A DNA stretch of 64,000 nt from Octopus sinensis. Its lineage: Eukaryota. How positions within the stretch are numbered: the stretch's first letter is position 1; each line of letters starts with the position of its first letter. The DNA is taken from NCBI RefSeq assembly GCF_006345805.1, contig NC_043024.1, forward strand, positions 18,104,001-18,168,000, in the 5' to 3' direction. Positions 13,589 to 63,733 of the stretch are shown here, in pieces. The notes beneath the pieces were generated by a model that had not been told where the DNA came from, ran no database searches, and saw only the letters and a list, made by a program, of their open reading frames with translations. The translations under genes and the position numbers were made by a program.

Positions 13589-16500
13589 TATATATGTATA
13601 TATATATATATATATATATACAAGAAGAAAATGGATGTAAATAACAAGGAGAAACTTGTCGTTTTAGCTGGTATACTTTTAATTTAATCAATTAACAAAG
13701 AAGAAGATGGCATTATGTATGTGTGTGTGTGTGTCTTCTACTATAACCTCGGGCTAACCAAAACCTTGTGAGTGGATTTGATAGAAACTGAAAGAAGCCC
13801 ATCGTATATATGTATATATGTGTATGTTAACCACCATTATCAATTGGTAGAAGCGTATATTGGTACCTGCTTCGATTATGTATCCCCATCAGCCCAAAAA
13901 TTTTGGAAACTAGACTAATATATATGTATATATACAGACACAGCTGTGTAGTAAGAAGCTTGCTCCCCAACCACATGGTTTCAGGTTCAGTCCCACTGTG
14001 TGGCACCTTGGCAAGTGTTTTTTTATTATAGCCTCAGACTGACCAAAGCCTTGTGAGTGGATTTGGTTGATGGAAACTGAAAGAAGCCTGTCATATATAT
14101 GTGTGTGTTTGTGTTTGTTCCCCACCATTGTTTGACAACCAGTTTTGGTCTCTTTGTGTCCCTGTAACTTAGCAGTTTGGCAAAAGAGTTGATTAAAATA
14201 TGGACAAGTCTTTATAAACTGATAAGTACGGGGGGTGGGCGAATTCATTTGAACTAAAATTCCTCAAGGTGGTGCCCCAGCATGGCCACAATCAAATAAC
14301 TAAAACAAATAAGAGATAAAAATAAAATAAAAAGATATATATAGGTGCAGGCTTGGCTGGGTAGTAAGAAGCTTCCTTCCCACCACATGGTTCCAGGTTC
14401 AGTCCCACTGCATGGCATCTTGGCAAGTGTCTTCTACTATAGTTCAACCAAAGCCTTGTCAGAGGATTTGGTAAACGGAAACTGAAAGAAGCCTATCATA
14501 TATATACACATATATATATTATATGTATGTGTTTGTGTGTGTCTATGTTTGTCCCCCACCAACATCGCTTGACAACTGATGTCAGTGTATTTACATCCCC
14601 ATAACTTAGAAGTTCAGCAAAAGAGACTGATAGAATAAGTACTAGGCTTACAAAGAATAAGTACTGGGGTTAATTTTTTTTTTTTGCAACTAAAGGCAGT
14701 GCTCCAGCATGGCCACATTCAAATGACTGAAACAAGTAAAAGAATACCCACCCACACACACATATATATATACATACACATATATACATATACACACATG
14801 TTCATGAAGTAAAACAAAAAACAAGCAAAAATTTTTTAAATAATTACAAAATTACAAAATTGTAAAATAGAAATAAAGTAAAAATACTTTCAAAAAAAAG
14901 ATGTTGAGGCAATAGAAAAAATAAAAGAACAAAAATGAAACCAGATGAAGTGACCGATGATAAGAAAGAAATGTGGAGAGATGGAGGAGGGAAGCTGCAC
15001 AGTCGGGGCCCCAATGAAACTAATAAAAATCTCAATATAACTATAGCAAAAGGAAAATGTTCAGCAAGTGAAGAGGAGGTTGATGTGTGAGAGAGGCTGT
15101 TAATGAGTGGAAGTAGGAAGAGGAGGTGTAGAGGAGAGCAACATTAAAGTTAGATATCGTGCTGGAGGACCATCATCTCGCAGATATTGTTTGGGTGGGT
15201 GTTGATGTCTTTTTATAGATTTGTGATAGGCAGAAGCGGGTGGATTTGGTTTGTTTTGGGAGTGGGTTTACTTTTTTTTGACCGGTTCTGCCAAGTTTTT
15301 TTTACAAGTGCAGCAGTGGTGGTGCTGGTGCTGGTGCTGGTGGCTGTGGTGACTAGCGATGTGATAGTGAGGTGGTAATAGTGGCCCTGGTGATGGGTGT
15401 AGCATCAGCAGTGGTGGTGGTGGTGGTGGTGGTGGTGGTGGTGGTAGTAGTGGTGGTGATGGCGGCAGCGGTGGTGGTGAAGAAGTTATGGCAATGTTGA
15501 TGTACTGGTATTATATATGGTGGTGGTAGTTTTGGAGTTGGTGTCTGCAGTGGTGGTTGTGATGATACCAGTAGTGGTAGTGGTGGTAGTGGTAGTAGTG
15601 ATGGTGGGGGTGATGATGATGATGGTGATGTGGGTTGTTTTTTAAGTTTATTACTCTTTTTGCATTATTTTCTCAGGACATAAAATACGAAAATAATTGT
15701 TTCTAATTTAGGAACAATGCTTTCAGGGGTTTTTAAGGGGAGGGGTTTATTAGTACCATCAATGCCCCTCTTCCCCACTCCCACCATACTAGAAGGATGA
15801 AAGACAAAGTTGGCCTCAGCAGAGTTCGAACTCAGAACCCAATGAACCAGTAGAAATATCACAGGACATTTTTCCCTGATGCTCTGATGATTCAACCACA
15901 TTTGGAGACAGAAATTCTCAAATTTGAGGGGGAAGGTAGAGTTGATGCTACTGATCCCTGAGTCTAATTTCCAGGCCAGGTGTGTGGGGCATATTTTGGA
16001 AATTGGGTGTATGTATGCACTTGTGTGCACATGTGTACATGTGTGTGTGTGTGTGTGTTCCACATAAAATATGTTTTACATATTTTATAAGTTATATGGC
16101 TTGGTGGTTGAAGTGCTGAACACGTGGTCATTAACATATGGTTTCAATTCCCAGAACAAGCAAACAACATATTAAGCCCTTAAGCAAAGTACTACTCTTC
16201 ATGCAGCAGCTGGGGAGTTTAGCTCAGTGAAAGACCGGTGACCTATCCCAGAGAGAGCCCTGTGCTCGCAGTTATTTAAGTCCACCCAACACCAACACCC
16301 AGACCCCTACACACATGGACCAATTTTCCTAATCCTTCTGCCTTCACGCAGCTTCAATCCCCAGTAATTCCATCTCCCACCCATGTACCCACAACTTACT
16401 GACCCACAAACATCATTCTCACCGGTCTTGGAGCATTTATAAGTTAGCCCCTTGTGGGTAGTAAAGAAATAGGTCTTGGAGCATTTACAAGAAATCAAGG

Positions 16501-21927: not shown

Positions 21928-23700
21928 GTATATGTGTGTGTGTATGTGTGTGTATATGTTCGTGTGTCTGTGTTTGTTCCCCCAACATCGCTTGACAACT
22001 GATGCTGGTATGTTTACGTCTCCTGTAACTTAGCGGTTCGGCAAAAAGAGACCAATAGAATAAGTACTAGGCTTACAAAGAATAAGTCCTGGGGTAAATT
22101 TTCTCGACTAAAGACGGTGCTCCAGATGGCAACAGTCAAAGGACTGAAACAAGAAAAAGAGTAAAAGAGTAAATGTTCCCCACCTGGACAGGACGCAGGA
22201 TAAGTAATCGCAGGGTGTACTCATGTACAGCTGAGTGGACTGAAGCAATGTGAAGAGAAGTGTTTTGCTCAAGAACACATGTCACCCGGTCCAGGGGTTG
22301 AAACTGCAATCTTAAGATCATAAATCTTAACACCCTAACCACTAAGCCATGTGCCTCCACTATTGTAGAAATGGTGTATAGTGTAGTGTTGCAGTAATAT
22401 TCTGCTCTAGACACAAGGCCTGAAATTATGGGGGAAGGGGCCAGTTGATTAGATCGACCCTGGTATGCAGCCGGTACTTAATTTATTGACCCCAAAAGGA
22501 TGAAAGGCAAAGTCAACCTCAGTGGAATTTGAACTCAGAACGTAAAGACAGCCGAAATACTGCTAAGCATTCTGCCTGGCGTGCTAACGATTCTTATTTC
22601 TTTACTGCCCACAAGGAGCTACACACAGAGGGGACAAACAAGGACAGATAAACGGATTAAGTCGATTATATCGAACCCAGTGCATAGCTGGTACTTATTT
22701 AATCAACCCCAAAAGGATGAAAGGCAAAGTCAGCCTCGGTGGAATTTGAACTCAGAATGTTGCAGTAGACAATTCTACCAACTCGCCACCTTAGCATCAT
22801 AATAATATTCTTTTCTACACTAGACACAAGGCCCAAAACTTTGGGGGAAGGGCTGGTCAATTAGATCAAACCAGTACACAACTGGTACTTAATTTATCGA
22901 CAAGCTTTCTTCTGTTCCATCTGAAATCCACTCGCAAGGCCTGAAACAATAGTAGCAGACACTTGCCCAAGGTGCATGCAGTGGGACTGAACCCAGAACC
23001 ATGTGGTTGGGAAGCAAGTTTCTTACCACACAGCCATGCCTGCTCCTATAACATAAAAAGGAAAGAAGTTAAATTAAATGTATTTAGAATTTGAAACCCC
23101 AACAACAAACTTTAAATACTGCAAATCACTCCTAACACCACAACTCCATCAGCTTCCAATCTCTGGGAAATCAGGGATTTTTTAGTTTTTTTCTCTCTTT
23201 AAACCAAATCGTTATGAATTCAAGTACTAAACTTTATTTTCCACATTTCAATTTTCCATGCGGAAATTTAATCCATTTTATCTCCTGTGTGGATGTAATT
23301 TATTTGTGTGTCACTTCCAGCTGTTTTATTATTAAAACTAAAACTGTTTCTGTCATTTTATCATCATCTTCCCCATTATCATCATCATCATAATTATAAT
23401 TATTTTAATGACAATTACGAAAATGATTGTTTATTAGCCTCGTCAGCATTTTTGTTATTAAGGGTGATGGATTACCATTGTTGAGATTGGTGGCATGGTG
23501 TAAGAAGTTCACTAGGTATAGGAGTGGCTGTGTGGTAAGTAAGTCGCTTACCAACCACATGGTTCCAGGTTCAGTCCCACTGCGTAGCACCTTGCGCAAG
23601 TGTCTTCTACTATAGCTTCCGGCCGACCAAAGCCTTGTGAGTGGATTTGGCAGACAGAAACTGAAAGAAGCCTGACATATATATGTGTATATATAATTTT

Positions 23701-24018
23701 AATATTTCTATTATTGAAAACAAGTGGATGTATTCCACTGAAACTAGGTAAATAGATTCTTCGAACGGGGACAGTCAGTAGCGACACCTGCTGGGTCTGA
23801 CTACGCTGCATTGATAAAGGGTAAATACCCTGAAACATGTCTGCAGCTGTCTGACTGGCAGGATGAAGCGGCTGACCTCCCCTGTTTGAAGGTTTATAAT
23901 GGACGCAGGTTGTGTGTCATATAGCTAGCTTGAGGCAGTGGCCTCTTGGAGCTAATCAGCGACAGCTTTAGTCTTATATTTATAAGACTGCCATATAAGT
24001 ATGGCGATAACTATTAAT
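23701..24018. repeat. Inverted, differently permuted copy of the 361-bp structured repeat, nested in the microsatellite of a SINE
   Basis: The reverse complement aligns with 6460-6770. It splits a SINE into 23517-23690 and ~24100-24325. Confidence 0.75.
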
Positions 24019-24128: not shown

Positions 24129-24971
24129 TTGTCCCCCCCCCCAACATCGCTTGACAACCGATGCTGGTGTGTTTACATCACCGTAACTTAGTGGTTCGGC
24201 AAAAGAGACTGATAGAATAAGTACTAGGCTTACAAAGAATAAGTCCTGGGATCGATTTGTTCGACTAAAGGCGGTGCTCCAGCATAGCCACAGTCAAATG
24301 ACTGAAACAAGTAAAAGAGAGAGTAAAAAGTATTCCAGTCATGTAGTTTGGGGTTCAAACTCACTGTACAGCTTCTGGGGAAAGTTGTCTGTTGTCCTAA
24401 CCTCAAATAAAACAAAGTCTTCTCAGTGAAGTTTGATAAATGGGAATTGTGTAGAAGGTCCTCAGATGGTCGTTCAAAGGGGTCTTTTGAATGAACAGCA
24501 CATGGAATTTATGTCTCCACACTATCCACTTGTAATAACAAAATATGAACTTCTATCGGAACCTACATACCATGGACAAGAAGCATTTCTACCCATTCTA
24601 CACAGCACTTTCCTTGGATAATGGAACTGCAACTGCAACATCCTACATATATTTTTATTTTTATTCTCTTATTTCCCTTTATACTTCATATATCCATCCT
24701 TTTCCAAAGTAACTCCTTATACTGAACTCAGCTATTTCCCTCTAATTAACTCTCTCGTATCGTTTCTGATGAAGGGATATCCCTAATATCCCAGAAACAG
24801 CTTTACAAATGTCCTAGAAATTTCACACTGCCTTTGCTTTGTTGTCTCACTTTATTTAATATATAAATGCGAAGAACCAAGAGTCTAAGTACAGTCCTCC
24901 CATAGCACTTACATAGCCTTACCTACCATTTTGGGTCTTTTGGATACCAATATCTCTCATATATATAATAT

Positions 24972-25007
<36 letters not shown>

Positions 25008-25087
25008 CCTCACTCAGAGATTTATTATTGCTTGTTTACACTTTTATGATATCAGTGACTTTTCGTGACTGGAAAAAGGATATATAT

Positions 25088-26300
25088 TTGCAAAGGGAAC
25101 CTACTTTTCATTGACAACCGGTGATTGTCACGTGCGTCGTTGAAGTGTTGTTTTTTGCGGAGTTGGAGTTTATGATATTGTGAGTTGCAGAAATTGTTAT
25201 TAGAAATTTTATTGTTGAAAGTACTATTGTAGTTGAATTTTGAAAATTATTTTGTAGCTACCCTTTGTGGGTATGCAAACAAGTTACGCCCAGGCAGCAA
25301 GCAAAAGCCTGTCGGCCGACATGTTGCAGCTGAAAGAATTGAGAAGGAAGGTTTGAAGAAATATTTCGAAAATTTCAAGAAGGAGGGTGATTGCTTACAG
25401 ATCACACTGCCGGAGGAAGACGCAGAAAAAGCGAGGAAAAAGATTATTGTATATAGAACGTGGAGTGTGGCCAACAAGAAAATAGAAGTGGAAAAAGTTG
25501 AAGAAAAAAACGGCAGAAAGAAAGAGAACAAGGGTGGAGTCACCACCAAAAAGCCCAAAGAAAAGTAAAGTAGAAAATGAAGGAAGAAAGACAACAGCAA
25601 GGGGAAAAAGTACAGAGATTCAAACCCAGGAACTGAAGACAATGACAGGAAGTAAAGAAGGTAAAACCAGAAAAGAGAAATGCGAAGAATGGATGAGGAA
25701 GGTGATGGAGAGAGTAAATCATGTAAAACAAACAGGACGACCTATGGGAGAGAATGTAAGAAGGTTAATTTTGTATGAAAAATATGGAGATTAAAAAAAG
25801 ATTAACAAAAACAAAAGGACTGATATGAGTGAAATTAGAAAACGACATGTTCGAACCAAGCGCTAGAGCGATGTTAATAGAAAAAGAAAAAATAGACAAA
25901 TTGGCAGAGACATTTAAAGGAAAGATTAAAGTAAGTAAAATAGACGTTCGCTATGATAGCCTGCCCAACGTGATTGGGATGGAGGATGTTATCAAACATA
26001 TATCTAATGGATAAGTGGAACAGTTGCAAAATGTATAAATGAAACTGCAAGCTTAAGGGACTCGCAAGCCATTCCATTTCCCATTACACATAACTCATTT
26101 CATATTCATTATTTGTTTTATGTACCCCAAATTTTGTATTGTTTTGTATGTAAATTGTAATGTCCTTTTTATATTCAGGCTACATGCCTATAATAAAGAG
26201 AAACCGGTGATTGTCACACACTGATGATGGGTCAATACTCAGAAACTCGAGTCCGTGTGTATCATAGGTTGAAGATGGGAAGGATGGCTTCCCTTTGCAA
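25088..26300 (+). mobile_element. Unclassified 1.2-kb element: imperfect inverted ends, decayed K/E-rich RRM-like ORF, 3' hammerhead
   Basis: ttgcaaagggaa (25088-25099) and ttccctttgcaa (26289-26300) form a perfect 12-bp inverted repeat. A 16-bp direct repeat aaccggtgattgtcac lies at 25116-25131 and 26202-26217. ORF pieces at 25233-25568, 25498-25794 and 25829-26014. AATAAA at 26192. Hammerhead at 26215-26259. Confidence 0.6.
26215..26259 (+). ncRNA. Minimal type-I hammerhead ribozyme motif
   Basis: cacaca-CTGATGA-tgggt(caat)actca-GAAA-ctcgag-TC-cgtgtg. Core is intact, stem II has 5 bp, stem III ACTCGAGT is a perfect palindrome, and the GUC triplet predicts cleavage after 26253. Stem I has 5 bp plus an A.C mismatch at the core-proximal pair. 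Confidence 0.75.
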
Positions 26301-26422
26301 TTATTGATAGGGCACAAAAGTGTGTCAATAGCCAGCTGGAGGAGGTGTCCTCCTGGGGCTACAAGCTACAGTAGCATCCACACTTAGGCGTTAGCTACAT
26401 TTAAGTGGCAAATATACTTCAT

Positions 26423-26463
<41 letters not shown>

Positions 26464-29400
26464 CCATTGTCATCATCATTATTATTTAATGTCCACTCTG
26501 CCATGTTTATATGGATCAAACATAATTTGTTGAGATGGATTTTCTATGGCAGGGTGCCCGTCCTATTGCCAACCCTCATCTTTTTCAAGCAAGGTAATAT
26601 TTTCCCAATGCTAGCCATAATTTCACAGAAGATTAGAAATGGAGATTACTACTGGCACGGCATTGAATCTCACTTAGGACTATCTTGTGATGTCAAGGCA
26701 AGGAGAGAGTAACACACTTGCACACACAAGCATGCTCAATATAATAGGTTTCTTTCAGTTTCCATCTACCAAATCTATTCACAAAGTTTTCATTGGTCTA
26801 TAGCTATAATGAAAAAAAGAAAACACTTACCCCGGGTACTTAACTGAAAGATTTTATTGTGTCTTCAATTTCATTCTATGGTGAAAATTATTAAAATTAT
26901 AACACTCATTATGTCTTTCACATTGTTCCATACATTCAACCTTTTGATACCAAATTTCTGTTGAGATACACAGCCTTTTCATTTCCAATAAATTTTTTTT
27001 TTAATATAAAAATTTATTAAAATAACTTTTTCATTATTAAGTTGGAAACAAATTAACATGAAATATAGGTGCAAGAGTGGCTGTGTGGTAAGTAGCTTGG
27101 TTACCAACTACATGGTTCCAGGTTCAGTCCCTCTGCATGGCACCTTAGGCAAGTATCTTCTGCTACAGCCTCGGGCTGACCAAAACCTTGTGAGTCGATT
27201 TGGTAGACGGAAACTGAAAGAAGCCCATCGTATATGTATGTATGTATGTGTGTATGTATGTATGCATACATGCATGCATTCATGCATGTATTTACTTGTT
27301 TCAGTCCTTTGACTGCAGCCATGCTGGAGCACCACCTTTAGTCGAGCAAATCAACCCCAGTACTTATTCTATCGGCCTGTTTTGCCAAACCACTAAGTTA
27401 CGGTGAAGTAAACACACCACCATCGGTTGTCAAGCGATGTTGGAGGGACAAACACAGACACACAAACATATACACACACCTACATACATATATACAATGG
27501 GCTTCTTTCAGTTTCCGTCTACCAAATCCACTCACAAGGCTTTGGTCAGCTCGAGGCTATAGTAGAAGTCACTTGCCCAAGATGCCACGCAGTGAGACTG
27601 AACCTTGAACCATGTGGTTACTTACCACAAGCTACTTACCACACCCACTCCTGCACCTATATATATATATATACATATGTATGTATATATGTATGTGTTT
27701 GTGTGTGTGTGTTTATCACCCCATCGCATGACAACCAATGCTGGTATGTTTATGACCCTGTAACTTAGCGGTTCAGCAAAAGAGACTGATAGAATAAGTA
27801 CTAGGCTAACAAAGAATAAACCCTGGGATCGATTTGTTTGACTGAAACAAGTAAAAAGAATGAAATTTTGAATGGAGTGTTTTAATTTAGAATACTTTAA
27901 GGCAGGACATTTCTATCCTAGAACCAGGGGTGAGGGCAGTCTCAGGAAAGGCTGGGAACAAAAGGGTTAACCCTTTTGTTACCCTATTTCTGTTGAAATA
28001 CATGTTATTAATCTGGTGTTTGGAAAATAAATTAACAAGAAATTTTAATGGAATGTGTTAAATTTACATCACTTCAATACAGAAAGTCTGTCTGAAAGGA
28101 GTAGAGACAGTCCCGGATTATATTCAGTTTAAAATACTCTGACTTTGTCTTAATATATTTCAAAAGTAGTAAAAGAACTGAAGATAATTTCGTCGTTAAT
28201 TAAGCTGTGTTGTAAGGAACAAATTAACATGAAATTTTTATGGGAGGTTTTTATTTAGATCACATTAATAGAGGGCATGGATTGGATGGTTTGACATGTT
28301 CCAATGAGCTGCAGAGCATCATCAAGCTTTAATACCTGCTTCGACATGGTTTCTACAGCTGGATGCCCTCCCTAATGCCAACCACTTACAGAAAGGCCTG
28401 GGTGCTTTTCATGTGGCAACAGCACTGGCCAGGTCTGCTTTGGCATGGTTTCTACAGCTGGATGCCCTTCCTAATGCCAACCTCTTTGCAGTGAGTATCA
28501 GGTGTGTTTTTTTGTGATGCCAACACTAGTGAGGTCACCAAGAAACACACAGGACAAGATTCCTCCACTGAATGGGATGTAATACAGGGAGAGGACAGAA
28601 GAGGGAGATTCAGCAGTTATTTCTAGTTGATCAAAAAGCCAAATTGAAGCTCTGTCACCGACTTATAAGTTGTTGTAGAAACAATGTCATAATATACCAA
28701 GGAGTACATTATCCAAAGTAACCTGTTTTTAAGGGAATAGACTATATCATTTGTGGCTGATTTGGTTGCTCTTTCTAGCATCCCAAGAGACTGCATGCTC
28801 TCTAATTTGTTGGCTCCTATATGTGGGTGGGTGTATGTATGTGTGCATGGATGTGTATTCTTTTATTCTTTTGCTTGTTTCAGTCATTTGACTGTGGCCA
28901 TGCTGGAGCATCACCTTAAAGGGTTTTAGTCAAACAAATCAACCCTTTTAAGCTTTCTGTTGGGCTCTTTTGCCAAACTGCTAAGTTACAAGAGCATAAA
29001 CACATCAGCACCAGTTGTCAAACAGTGTTGGCGGAGACAAACACTGACACACACACACACACACACACACATGATGGGCTTCTTTCAGTTTCCATCAACC
29101 AAATCCACTCGTAAGTCTTTGGTTAACCCAAGGCTATAGTGGAAGACACTTGCCCAAGGTGCCATGCAGTGGGACTGAACCCAGAACCATGTGATTGGGA
29201 GGCAAGCTTCTTACCACACAGCCAAACCTGTACCTTATATATGTATGTGTATATGTGTTTGTATATATATATATATTGCTCTTGCACGTGCAGCTGTGCA
29301 TGTACGTGTGTGTGTGTATGTGCATATAACTCTGTGCACTTGCATGTGTGTGTGTGTGCATCTGTGCCTTCATATGGTAAAAGTTTACGAAATAATTTTG

Positions 29401-29486
29401 TTTCTATGTATTTCTCTAATAATCCCTGTATATTTCTGTTTTTCTTTTCTTTCTATATCCTACCCTTAACCCTCAACACTTCACAG

Positions 29487-29656
29487 ACTGGCCACACCAC
29501 AAATTACTAGAGAAGACCCTTTATTTTCAAGTGATTGACTATGACAGATTCAGCCGAGATGACCCGATCGGAGAAATTACCATTCCTTTGAACGAGGTGG
29601 ATCTTACACAAAAAAAAAGCACATGGCGGTTTCTGGAACCATGCAAAGAGAGTAGG
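29487..29656 (+). CDS. SYT7: Internal coding exon of a synaptotagmin, end of the C2A domain, synaptotagmin-7-like
   Basis: Acceptor ...cacttcacag|AC at 29486/29487 and donor AGTAGG|gtaagt at 29656/29657. 170 nt, phase 1 start, phase 0 end. Translation xD-WPHHKLLEKTLYFQVIDYDRFSRDDPIGEITIPLNEVDLTQKKSTWRFLEPCKESR matches my recollection of vertebrate Syt7 C2A ([41 protein letters not shown]), including the Ca2+-binding DYD...D aspartates. Paralogue assignment is from memory, not a search. Confidence 0.9.
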
Positions 29657-32575: not shown

Positions 32576-35555
32576 GACCGGAGTAAACACATAAATGTGA
32601 AACAAGGTGGAAAAAAGAGTACTCAAATACCAGTGGTAGAGTAATATGCTTTATTTTAAGCAGCAGAAAATTCAACAAAATCTGTTACTCTGAGTTTCTT
32701 GTTGCCGTTCATCAGACAGTTTTTGCTAGAATGGAACATATATTAATTCAATCTATACTCTTACAAACGCTACACCTTTAAAAAGAAATGGACTTGTTTG
32801 ATTGGCCTTTAGAAAAAACGGTCAATCTTCGAGCGATAAACAAAAAGATCAAAAATATATGTATTATATATAAAAAAACTTATAAAAATTATAAAAAATT
32901 ATAAAATCCGAGGAAAAAACCTATTGCCGTTAATGAAGACAGTACAAATTAATGCATAGAAATTAAACCTGTTATAAATACTGCAATACATATTTATATT
33001 AAAATCCACATATATATATCAACATACACAAAAGGATGCGCGTAAACGCCATACATACATATACAGACGTATGAATATGAATCTAAATTATACACATAAA
33101 AGCATGTGTACATATATTCACGCAAACCGTCTCGCACGCAAGCTAAAATTCATCTATGTAGCAATTCTCATATACTGAGCAAGGAGGGGGAACGAAAGAA
33201 AGGGAAGAGAGAAAAAGGAACGAAAGAGGGGGGGGGGGGGAAACTTGTAGCGATGTTATTGGCATCTATAGAGGCCCGTATACATACACAAGTTTGAATT
33301 GATACATATACATACCGTCGTGTGTATGCGTGCTTAAGCACAAGCATACTTTCACTTACACATACACAGATACGCATGCTTACAAATACATATGCTTTGC
33401 TATACACAAACTTATATAAACATTCTAAATTTGACAACATTGCTTTTTTAAAAAAAACATTGCTTTTAAAAAAATGGGTGCATTAATAAAAATATATACG
33501 AAAGACATATAAAATAAAATATAACATCCTATTTTGGGTCATTTATAAATAATCAAGGTAATATAAATAATCAAGGTAATCCTATGCAATACAATAACAT
33601 GAAAACAAAGTTTGTAGGTTTTTCCTAATATATATGTAGAAACAATAAGACTTGCTATAGATCCGTCGTAGCGCTTAAGAGTCAAAATCAAAATCAAAAA
33701 TCAAAATACAAAATATATACTCTATCCATATGGTATATTTATATTCGACATTTTAAATTTAGCCGCGTGCCTACATAAGTTCATTAATCACTTCTTTGAT
33801 TCAAAGAATTATTGTCTTTGAATAATATGTGCATTTTTCTAATAAGCAAAGCTTGCACTTGAAATTATATTTGTAAGCTCCATGCCTGTATGGTGCCGCC
33901 CTGTCCAGAATGCTCCATGTCACGTTGAAAGGTGGGGCTTCCTTTTCTTTTAGTTCCCAGACATATTTTGCTAGGCTGGTTTTCTTCCTATTCTCTGGGT
34001 ATTTAAAAGAATTCTATGAGAATAAAATCTTGTTTTAAATGAATTTTCTGAAGCCCCTGTGTATGTCTTGTATTCCGATGAGCCTTCCACTTGCACCTTG
34101 GCTCTATAAACTACTCCTTTCACTAGACATTTCCCTTCTAACGGACAGGAGCTTTCGTTTTTGAAATTACATTTCTTAATGGGCTCGGCACCATGTCTAA
34201 TCTCAATTAGCTTCCTATTATGTTGGCTATGTAAGAGGCGAAATTTCTGCAACAAGAATAGCTAACCTTCAGGGTTCTTCTATTAAATATTCTGTAGAAT
34301 TTATGACCCTGCTAAAATGCTTAGAGTCTATCTCAAAAATTCCTTACCTATATTAGTCTTTACGGCCAAATTGAAAGCCGGGTTGAACCACAAAACTTTC
34401 CTGGTCCTAGTTCTTCGTGCAGCATTATTATTAGCATTAAGCTGGTTGAACTGGATCTTCTCCGAGAATCCACTATTCTTTAATGCGCTATCGTAATAAG
34501 GTGCAGCATTATGGAATGCTGCCTCGTCCGAAGAAATTGAAGATATTCTTCTACCTACATTGCTGACTAAGTTGCTAAGGATAACTGGTGGATGGTTCGA
34601 ATCTTTGTTTTCATGTTATTGTATTGCATAGGATTACCTTGATTATTTATATTACCTTGATTATTTATAAATGACCCAAAATAGGATGTTATATTTTATT
34701 TTATATGTCTTTCGTATATATTTTTATTAATGCACCCATTTTTTTAAAAGCAATGTTTTTTTAAAAAAAGCAATGTTGTCAAATTTAGAATGTTTATATA
34801 AGTTTGTGTATAGCAAAGCATATGTATTTGTAAGCATGCGTATCTGTGTATGTGTAAGTGAAAGTATGCTTGTGCTTAAGCACGCATACACACGACGGTA
34901 TGTATATGTATCAATTCAAACTTGTGTATGTATACTGGCCTCTATAGATGCCAATAACATCGCTACAAGTTTTCCCCCCCCCCCACCCCTCTTTCGTTCC
35001 TTTTTCTCTCTTTCCCTTTCTTTCGTTCCCCCTCCTTGCTCAGTATATGAGAATTGCTACATAGATGAATTTTAGCTTGCGTGCGAGACGGTTTGCGTGA
35101 ATATATGTACACATGCTTTTATGTGTATAATTTAGATTCATATTCATACGTCTGTATATGTATGTATGGCGTTTACGCGCATCCTTTTGTGTGGTTGATA
35201 TATATATGTGGATTTTAATATAAATATGTATTGCAGTATTTATAACAGGTTTAATTTCTATGCATTAATTTGTACTGTCTCATTAACGGCAATAGGTTTT
35301 TTTCCTCGGATTTTATAATTTTTATAATTTTATAAGTTTTTTTATATATATATACATATATTTTTGATCTTTTTGTTTATCGCTCGAAGATTGACCGTTT
35401 TTTCTAAAGGGCCAATCAAACAAGTCCATTTCTTTTTAAAGGTGTAGCGTTTGTAAGAGTATAGATTGAATTAATATATATGTTCCATTCTAGCAAAAAC
35501 TGTCTGATGAACGGCAACGAGAAACTCAGAGTAACAGATTTTGTTGAATTTTCTG
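32576..35555 (-). mobile_element. 5'-truncated Penelope-like retroelement with inverted pseudo-LTR arms
   Basis: Arms 32664-33610 and 34603-35555 are near-perfect reverse complements. The spacer carries a decayed minus-strand ORF end: NKDSNHPP, APYYDSALKNSGF, WFNP, KVSYSC, CPLEGKCLVKGVVYRAKV..KTYTGASENSFKTRFYSH (GIY-YIG-type endonuclease), TSLAKYVWELKEK, CKLCLLEK. Each arm holds a hammerhead-like motif, and both ends abut (TA)n. Confidence 0.85.
35494..35543 (+). ncRNA. Minimal hammerhead-like motif in the PLE pseudo-LTR (mirror copy on the minus strand at 32676-32725)
   Basis: caaaa-a-ctgt-CTGATGA-a-cg(gcaa)cg-a-GAAA-ctcagag-TA-acag-a-ttttg. Stem III is ACTC-A-GAGT and the triplet is GUA. 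Stem II is weak (2 bp with A.A closure) and weaker still in the left copy. Confidence 0.65.
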
Positions 35556-58196: not shown

Positions 58197-58410
58197 CTTC
58201 TTCTTATTGTTGTTGTTGCTGTTGTTAAGGCAGCAAGCTGCTGGCAGAATCATTAGCACATTGTATGAAATGCTTAATGGTATTTCACCCATCACTACAT
58301 TCTGAGTTTGACTCTCATCCTTTTGGGGGGAGGGGTGGTCAATGAATTAAGTACCAGTTACGCACTGGGGTCGATGTAATCAACTTGTCTCTACCCTCCA
58401 AAATTGCAGC

Positions 58411-59118
58411 CCTTGTGCCTTTAGTAGAAAGGATTATTAATATAATTATTATTAATGAGAAGGCAATGAGCTGGCTGAATCATTAGCACAGCAAAACGCT
58501 TAGTGACATGTCATCTGTCTTTACATTCTGGGTTCAAATGCTGCTGAGGATAACTTCGCCTATCGTCCCTTTCAGAGTCAATGAAATAAATACCAGTTAT
58601 GCACTGGGGTCAACTAGCCCTCTCCCCCAAAATTTCAGGCCTTGTGCCTTTAGTAGAAAGGATTATTAATATAATTATTATTAATGAGAAGGCAATGAGC
58701 TGGCTGAATCATTAGCACGGCAAAAAGCTTAGTGACATGTCATCTGTCTTTACATTCTGGGTTCAAATGCTGCTGAGGATAACTTTGCCTATCGTCCCTT
58801 TCAGAGTCAATGAAATAAATACCAGTTATGCACTGGGGTCAACTAGCCCTCTCCCCCAAAATTTCAGGCCTTGTGCCTTTAGTAGAAAGGATTATTAATA
58901 TAATTATTATTAATGAGAAGGCAATGAGCTGGCTGAATCATTAGCACGGCAAAAAGCTTAGTGACATGTCATCTGTCTTTACATTCTGGGTTCAAATGCT
59001 GCTGAGGATAACTTTGCCTATCGTCCCTTTCAGAGTCAATGAAATAAATACCAGTTATGCACTGGGGTCAACTAGCCCTCTCCCCCAAAATTTCAGGCCT
59101 TGTGCCTTTAGTAGAAAA
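58411..59118 (+). repeat. Near-identical 229-bp tandem triplication of one SINE copy
   Basis: ccttgtgcctttagtagaaa recurs at 58411, 58640, 58869 and 59098. Confidence 0.92.
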
Positions 59119-59194
59119 GATTATTATTATTATTATTATCATTCTTCTTCTTCTTATTATTATTATTAATATTATTATTATTATTATTATTATT

Positions 59195-62117: not shown

Positions 62118-63733
62118 CACAAACACATATATATGCACACATATACATACACTCACATATAAACAAACACATATACATACATGAAAACATACAAGACAAA
62201 AGTTACGTATGTATGATTGTGTTTTGTACACTTACACATATATACACACATGCATACACCTGCACACACACACATACACCCACACATGCACATATACACA
62301 CAAACGTATTTATATGTGTGCACACACACAGACATACACCACACATACACCTGCACACACACATGCACATATACATACAAACCTATTCCTACAAACACAC
62401 ACACATATACACACACCCATACACCTGCACACATATACACACTAACGTATTTATATGTGCACACACACACACACACGCCTGCACACACACATATACATAT
62501 ATGCCCAAACCTATTTCTACAAACACACACATATATACACACATGCAGAAGCGTATTTATGCATGCATACACACATACACACACACATATACACACAAAC
62601 CTATTCCTACAAACATACACACACACACATATACACATGCATACATACACACATATACACATGCATATATATATACATGCACACACATACACATATACAC
62701 ACAAACATATTTCTACAAGCATACTCACACATACACCAGCAGACACACACACAAACAGAAACATATTCACACACACAACACATATAGGATAAATGTAACA
62801 GCACTATTCTTCAGCACACAGTCTATATAAAAGCCACCAGGATCACTGCCACCATGACCACCACCACAGCACGAAACACTACAACAACCACAACAATAGC
62901 CGGTGCTGCTATATACGTCCAGTCTCATTGTTGTGGGGGTACATACCTAAGCTATTCCTGACAGAGACACAAACATAACATTTACCTGTATCTGTTGTTG
63001 TTGTCGTGTCATGTGCTTGTAATTGTTATTCTCGTCTATGTCTGTCTTGGCTTGTCTCCATTTTACACCTACATTCCTTCTCTCTCTCTTTCTCTCTCTC
63101 ACACACACACACATACACCAATGTCAAGTGTGTACAGACAGACAAAGTGACTCACAAACAGTTTATTTAAGCTGATGCACTCCACGTTTGTATTGAGTAC
63201 TTCTCTGTTATGTGTACATGGACTATTATAAATATAAGAGGAAGAGCATCCAGCTGAAGAAACCATGCCAAACCAGACTGGAGTCTAGCGCTGCTCCCCA
63301 GCTTGCTAGCTCTGGTCACACTGTCCAACCCATGCCAGCATGGACAACAGACGTTAAATGATGATGATGATGATATAGATATATATATACATACATGGCT
63401 CTGTGTTTGTGTTGGTGTGTGGTAGGAGGTTTGCTTCCCAAACACATGGTTCTGGGTTCAGTCCCACTGCATGACACCTTGGGCAAATGTTTTTTCCTAT
63501 AATTTTGGGCACGCCAAGGCCTGGTGAATGGATTTGGAAGACGAAAACTGAAAGAAGCTTGTCATATATATGTATGTATGTATGTGGTAGGAAGTTTGTT
63601 TCCCAACTACATGGTTCTGAGTTCAATTCTACTACATGGTGCCTTGAGCAAGTGTCTTTACCTTTAGCCATCGACCAACCAAAACCTCCTGAGTAGATTT
63701 GCAAGACGGAAACTCAAAGAAGCCTATCATACG

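Follow-up and report, generated by a model that had tools for sequence, protein, structure and literature searches.

The locus and its surroundings

The window analyzed here, a 64-kb stretch (64,000 nucleotides) of the Octopus sinensis genome, has 26-43% GC and contains dense TA and CA microsatellites, SINE-like repeats and a C2-domain-like exon. At positions 25088-26300 it holds two imperfectly inverted arms, a short direct repeat, the pieces of a degenerate open reading frame (ORF) and a hammerhead-like motif. Direct reading of 24800-26600 reveals perfect 12-bp inverted ends, with TTGCAAAGGGAA at 25088-25099 (+) and its exact complement, TTCCCTTTGCAA, at 26289-26300 (+). Beyond these 12 bp the inverted similarity is imperfect, and local alignment traces it through 44 nt of the left arm and 47 nt of the right, bearing out a first-pass annotation of this DNA that had described a 12-bp terminal inverted repeat with an imperfect extension of about 30-50 bp. 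The left arm (25088-25131, +) pairs with the right arm (26254-26300, +) through 35 bp, four of them G.U, and the duplex is more stable as plus-strand RNA (-45.8 kcal/mol) than as minus-strand RNA (-35.2 kcal/mol).

The same annotation had noted a 16-bp direct repeat, at the 5' end and again after an AATAAA, and this repeat is exact: AACCGGTGATTGTCAC stands at 25116-25131 (+), the inner end of the left arm, and at 26202-26217 (+), just past an AATAAA at 26192-26197 (+), with 16 of 16 positions identical. The second copy still serves as the proximal 5' strand of hammerhead helix I, so that the repeat coincides exactly with a break in the left arm on one side and with the start of helix I, beside the catalytic core, on the other. 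Outward of the break, 25088-25115 pairs with the distal right arm, and the sequence immediately upstream of the proximal 16-mer does not. The inner 16 nt of the left arm match the helix I 5' strand at 16 of 16 positions, but only 10 of the 16 agree with the reverse-complemented 3' strand; this copy is thus direct rather than inverted, as fits a target-site duplication and not an inverted terminal copy. The arms as a whole are about 70% alike, and the 16-bp repeat is perfect. A BLAST search finds no other copy of the element in the rest of the 64-kb window. Sequence outside the arms folds with z-scores of -2.3 and +0.8 and is not convincingly structured, which makes the ends of the hairpin the best-supported boundaries of the locus.

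Several other features lie nearby. An ORF fragment at 29531-29650 (+) resembles a C2-domain (synaptotagmin-like) exon; the element is probably situated within an intron of a gene of this kind or next to one. A SINE-like repeat, whose spurious translation contains CPRCHAVGLNPEPC, has at least five copies in the window (13910-14248, 23548-23838 and 63354-63704 on the minus strand; 27427-27768 and 29139-29510 on the plus strand). A tandem repeat at 58389-59139 comprises 3.3 copies of a 229-bp unit with 98% matches, followed by (ATT)25. Finally, CTGATGAACGGCAAC[A/G]AGAAACTCAGAGTA occurs as two near-identical inverted copies, at 32715 (-) and 35504 (+), about 2.8 kb apart around a very AT-rich microsatellite block; the two could belong together as a pair of repeats, or could mark the termini of a further element.

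The hammerhead motif and the restored hairpin

The motif at 26218-26253 (+) comprises a hammerhead catalytic core with helices II and III, its C3 at 26221. The core elements are CUGAUGA (26221-26227), GAAA (26242-26245), U26252 and C17 at C26253, and cleavage is predicted between C26253 and C26254. Helix II is a 4-bp stem, UGGG/CUCA, with one G.U pair and a UCAAUA loop, helix III consists of an A-U and a C-G pair capped by the palindrome UCGA, and helix I runs for 5-6 bp before a 3-4-nt bulge in its 5' strand and further pairs. The site therefore combines the conserved type-I core with three helices, of which helix I is open. A descriptor built from CUGANGA, a helix II of 4 bp, GAAA, a helix III closed by A-U, H17 and at least five of six helix I pairs matches this site alone across both strands of the window, against a mean of 0.01 sites in 200 dinucleotide-preserving shuffles.

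The first-pass annotation had called this a core-intact type-I hammerhead, and it was right that the core is complete and that the motif exceeds what chance would supply; the call needs qualification on several points. Searches of Rfam at the gathering threshold and at E<=10 yield no usable hammerhead match, and a direct comparison of a 91-nt slice with RF00163 (Hammerhead_1) gives 10.6 bits against a threshold of 34 (E 8.8), in a mis-registered alignment. The site deviates from the consensus by a U-A pair at 10.1-11.1, where G-C is usual, and a C.A mismatch at 1.1/2.1, and a fold constrained to the hammerhead is 7 kcal/mol less stable than the rod-like minimum-free-energy structure. We take the hammerhead to be real but probably weakened as a ribozyme.

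At 24766-24803 (+), 320 bp upstream of the element, lies a second CUGAUGA...GAAA motif, whose helix II position is occupied by a perfect stem of 7 bp (GGGAUAU/AUAUCCC). We rejected it as a hammerhead: it has neither helix I nor helix III, and its fold has a z-score of -0.84. It sits inside a palindrome, GUUUCUG...CAGAAAC. It is probably a chance match or a very decayed minimal hammerhead of the kind found in Penelope-like elements (PLEs).

A pattern scan of metagenomes with the helix III sequence finds the same helix III, GAAACUCGAGUC, in independent canonical type-I hammerheads; the matches come from unrelated invertebrates and bacteria and serve as comparators only. A canonical type-I family of the form GGAGCAA-CUGAUGA-GGUUC...GAACC-GAAACUCGAGUC-UUGCUU is abundant in one host-associated metagenome (loci L005, L007, L009, L010, L015-L017, L021, L023, L024, L026, L028, L031, L032 and L037-L040; metagenomes Ga0126336 and Ga0099820), and another locus, L001, carries two tandem copies of a different hammerhead, spaced by 662 bp and retrozyme-like in appearance.

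The relation between the hammerhead and the arms becomes apparent in an empty-site reconstruction, in which we deleted 25132-26217, that is, the sequence between the repeats together with one repeat copy. What remains folds as a single uninterrupted 127-nt hairpin (-55.8 kcal/mol, z-score -6.3; none of 200 dinucleotide shuffles is equally stable), and the hammerhead core occupies its tip. Since a simple deletion restores the hairpin, the apparent terminal inverted repeats are the two strands of one extended helix I of about 35 bp. Most likely the restored hairpin is what remains, as a solitary relic, of a ribozyme repeat associated with a retrozyme or a Penelope element.

Could the hammerhead instead be a coincidence, and the 127-bp palindrome a MITE-like relic of a DNA transposon that was later struck by a retrocopy? 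The failure of Rfam to recognize a ribozyme, the perfect 12-bp terminal inverted repeat and a 3-bp ATT that can be read on both flanks if the terminal repeat is taken as 11 bp would all suit this idea. Against it, the full core and helices II and III fall at the exact tip of the hairpin and in register with helix I, which chance is very unlikely to produce; the descriptor expectation of 0.01 per 64 kb applies even before a long hairpin is required. In addition, the bulge in helix I, the 6-nt length of loop 2 and the palindromic tetraloop on helix III are those of canonical metazoan type-I hammerheads (PMC4209133, PMC7229834). We regard a chance hammerhead as very improbable.

The intervening sequence and its protein family

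Between the two copies of the repeat, 25132-26201 (+) has the anatomy of a 1,070-bp retrocopy, with a 142-nt 5'UTR, a degenerate ORF and a 187-nt 3'UTR that contains the AATAAA signal and ends in AATAAAGAGA. This A-rich end, without a long poly(A) tail, abuts the repeat directly, and the AA of the repeat comes next. An exact 16-bp repeat thus flanks the insert at both junctions, within the range of about 7-20 bp for target-site duplications made by target-primed reverse transcription. The insert is 40% A, and its CpG observed/expected ratio of 0.71, against 0.40 for the whole window, suggests either a more recent arrival than the surrounding sequence or a source with less methylation.

The ORF spans 25274-26014 (+), with its start ATG at 25274 and its pieces in the reading frames 25233-25568, 25498-25794 and 25829-26014. 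A word-indexed protein search with the joined ORF returned no match, whereas an exhaustive HMMER scan of 1.8 billion representatives returned eight, seven of them convincing (E from 1e-16 to 6e-5), and profile searches added three further relatives. All ten (P0001-P0007 and P0009-P0011) are "uncharacterized" proteins of Octopus bimaculoides, with 27-59% identity to the window ORF and short gene models of 116-288 aa. Alignments to these relatives run through a frameshift near 25350 (joining MQTSYAQAASKSLS... to EGLKKYF...), an in-frame stop at 25792-25794 and a second frameshift near 25820. As the alignments cross all three breaks, the three ORF pieces represent one decayed gene. The first-pass annotation had joined the same pieces by about two frameshifts; its pieces are indeed homologous to O. 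bimaculoides proteins, and their source is, as it had supposed, a repeated family, but the gene is further damaged by the stop and, near 25500, by an internal deletion that took out about 165 aa.

What this deletion removed is visible in the relatives, which have some 165 additional residues between the window's KKIEVEKVEE and KKKTAERKR. Within that stretch P0009 contains a CX2CX4HX4C knuckle, labeled CCHC-type by UniProt and scoring 18.5 bits as zf-CCHC against a Pfam cut-off of 20.8. P0011 has an internal deletion different from that of the window copy. Pfam otherwise finds no match in the window ORF pieces and nothing significant in the ten relatives, the zinc knuckle remaining borderline; no reverse transcriptase (RT), GIY-YIG, recombinase or endonuclease domain is found by Pfam in the ORF pieces or the ten gene models; and sequence searches of the PDB with the family return no relative. 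Judged from these comparisons, the family is a multi-copy, variously deleted, gag/ORF1-like one, apparently specific to Octopus.

Two proposals about the protein fare less well. A resemblance of its N-terminal part to an RNA recognition motif (RRM) had been seen by eye, and neither Pfam nor structure prediction supports it: AlphaFold models of the window protein and P0005 reach pLDDT values of 44.8 and 35.3, too low for a fold search or for a verdict on an RRM. The low-confidence model of P0005 has a beta-alpha-beta-beta-alpha-beta-like order, of which the window copy retains only the first strands. Likewise, the suggestion that the element carries its own RNA-binding protein is at odds with the loss, in the window copy, of the CCHC knuckle region, the candidate RNA-binding part.

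A proposed nested insertion and its place among known systems

We propose that the locus is a decayed gag/ORF1-like retrocopy nested in an older type-I hammerhead hairpin, a reading that we consider likely for the one locus examined. The older sequence would have been the 127-nt hairpin tipped by the hammerhead. A 1,070-nt RNA, consisting of a 5'UTR, a gag/ORF1-like ORF crippled before or after the event, a 3'UTR and an A-rich end, would then have been copied, by target-primed reverse transcription that duplicated 16 bp of the target, into helix I at a point of its 5' strand that lies 4 nt upstream of the core. Such an insertion would separate the outermost 28 nt of the left arm from the rest of the hairpin by 1.07 kb, giving rise to apparent terminal inverted repeats, and would leave the second copy of the 16-mer beside the core as an apparent internal direct repeat. 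Transcripts reading through the insert could, by an accident of position, undergo cleavage at 26253/26254. One retro-insertion into helix I, flanked by a target-site duplication, thus accounts together for the inverted ends, for the direct repeat and for the exactness with which they abut. The first-pass annotation was right that the region derives from a retroelement, and its more ambitious proposal, a single unclassifiable element uniting inverted ends, an RNA-binding protein and a ribozyme, is unsupported.

Some observations sit less comfortably with nesting. The insert has no long poly(A) tail, the hammerhead falls below the Rfam threshold with non-consensus positions at 10.1-11.1 and 1.1-2.1, and the 16-bp repeat is perfect despite the heavily damaged ORF; the last combination implies that the source copy was already defective, or else luck. 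With (TA)n on both sides and a ribozyme close to its 3' end, the whole unit could also be taken for a Penelope-type insertion.

The competing view closest to the original proposal is that of one 1.2-kb mobile unit, a non-autonomous, ribozyme-processed retroelement with its own gag/ORF1-like protein. On this view the inverted ends and the 16-mer would be built in, for example as an RNA panhandle with two alternative 5' strands for helix I. Such a unit would draw on the better pairing of its ends as plus-strand RNA, with four G.U pairs, on the ability of the hammerhead to fold with the proximal 16-mer, and on an ORF family that is multi-copy and resembles those of transposable elements. It would need three separate design features where nesting needs one insertion event, however, and would not explain why the repeat falls exactly where the arm is broken; moreover, no protein model among the relatives is linked to a ribozyme or RT, and a second copy is absent from the 64-kb window. 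We consider a single unit unlikely, and equally the retrozyme-like but protein-coding retroelement that it would imply, whose transcript would be closed by the 35-bp panhandle and trimmed by its own hammerhead, and would encode a gag/ORF1-like packaging protein, so as not to depend wholly on a partner.

A different possibility is a complex insertion in the style of PLEs, in which an ORF-bearing non-autonomous element with its own 3' hammerhead and an inverted or "tail" 5' structure was mobilized in trans by a PLE into (TA)n. PLEs prefer (TA)n targets and carry hammerheads near their 3' ends in pseudo-LTRs, their 5' end is often occupied by an inverted, 5'-truncated copy, and they have tails of 30-40 bp (PMC8557442); they are also abundant in Octopus (PMC13282606). 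At our locus, (TA)n microsatellites lie at 24950-25007 and 26423-26462, 80 bp to the left and 122 bp to the right of the hairpin. Yet the window has a TA tract roughly every 2 kb, which makes (TA)n on both flanks only mildly unusual. We reject an inverted 5' copy, since the inner 16 nt of the left arm are a direct, not an inverted, copy, and arms that are only about 70% alike contrast with the perfect repeat. The direct repeat spans 16 bp only and the hammerhead core occurs once, which leaves no pseudo-LTR; nor is there a long ORF nearby, or an RT or GIY-YIG domain in the relatives' gene models. On this evidence a PLE-style insertion seems quite unlikely.

If the nested reading is true, the locus is a case of ordinary transposon layering in a very repeat-rich genome, and it carries a caution: an insertion into a hairpin mimics an element with terminal inverted repeats and an internal direct repeat. 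Octopus also carries a type-I hammerhead of canonical style in which helix I is unusually long; our literature searches found no description of hammerheads in cephalopods. In the canonical metazoan type-I hammerhead, helix I runs for 5-6 bp up to a bulge in its 5' strand, helix II has 4 bp and a 6-nt loop, and helix III has 2 bp and a palindromic tetraloop (PMC4209133, PMC7229834; Cervera and de la Pena). With the hammerheads of metazoan retrozymes and PLEs (Cervera & de la Pena 2014, 2020) the octopus site shares the core, the 4-bp helix II, the helix I bulge and the 2-bp helix III with its palindromic tetraloop, which could allow dimer formation, as well as a moderately low GC content (0.45) and a PLE-rich invertebrate host. 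It differs from them in being single rather than tandem, in its helix I of about 35 bp within a 127-nt hairpin, in the U-A pair at 10.1-11.1 and the mismatch at 1.1/2.1, in its sub-threshold Rfam score and in having no adjacent RT/GIY-YIG ORF.

Non-LTR retrozymes consist of tandem 150-450-bp repeats, each with a type-I hammerhead, whereas the octopus locus has one site in 64 kb and no second unit. Retrozymes are expressed as circular RNA that is highly self-paired; for the octopus hairpin, strong self-pairing is predicted from the sequence. PLEs have an ORF for a telomerase-like RT with GIY-YIG, for which the octopus locus offers neither a Pfam match nor long ORFs nearby, and pseudo-LTRs in the form of direct repeats that each contain a hammerhead, in place of which we find a 16-bp repeat and a core that occurs once. 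DIRS-like elements combine RT and tyrosine recombinase with inverted terminal repeats and an internal complementary region. We rejected a DIRS-like origin, as the locus encodes neither enzyme and its internal 16-mer copies the inner, not the outer, end of the left arm.

The insert itself most resembles retrocopies made by LINEs and elements such as HAL1, a mammalian ORF1-only non-autonomous LINE derivative. They have in common the 5'UTR-ORF-3'UTR anatomy, an A-rich end, a target-site duplication (here 16 bp), the lack of RT and, in intact relatives, a gag/ORF1-like protein with a CCHC knuckle. The octopus insert departs from them in its negligible poly(A) tail and in having no demonstrated parent LINE, and its ORF family is without relatives in Pfam or PDB and has so far been seen in Octopus alone. 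In the classification of Khazina and Weichenrieder, type I ORF1 proteins of non-LTR retrotransposons are reportedly those that combine RRM and CCHC domains; in full-length elements an ORF2 with RT comes after them. The octopus relatives approach this arrangement, with one CX2CX4HX4C knuckle after segments predicted to be beta-alpha-beta-like, although at pLDDT values of 35-45 an RRM fold is not demonstrable, the zf-CCHC score lies just below the Pfam cut-off and the window copy has lost the whole knuckle region. As a lineage-restricted, uncharacterized gag/ORF1-like family with a CCHC knuckle, a conserved C-terminal domain and no Pfam or PDB relative, it merits an entry in repeat libraries. 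A new class of element is unsupported, and the locus is best read as a retrocopy and a hammerhead hairpin that each belong to known kinds.
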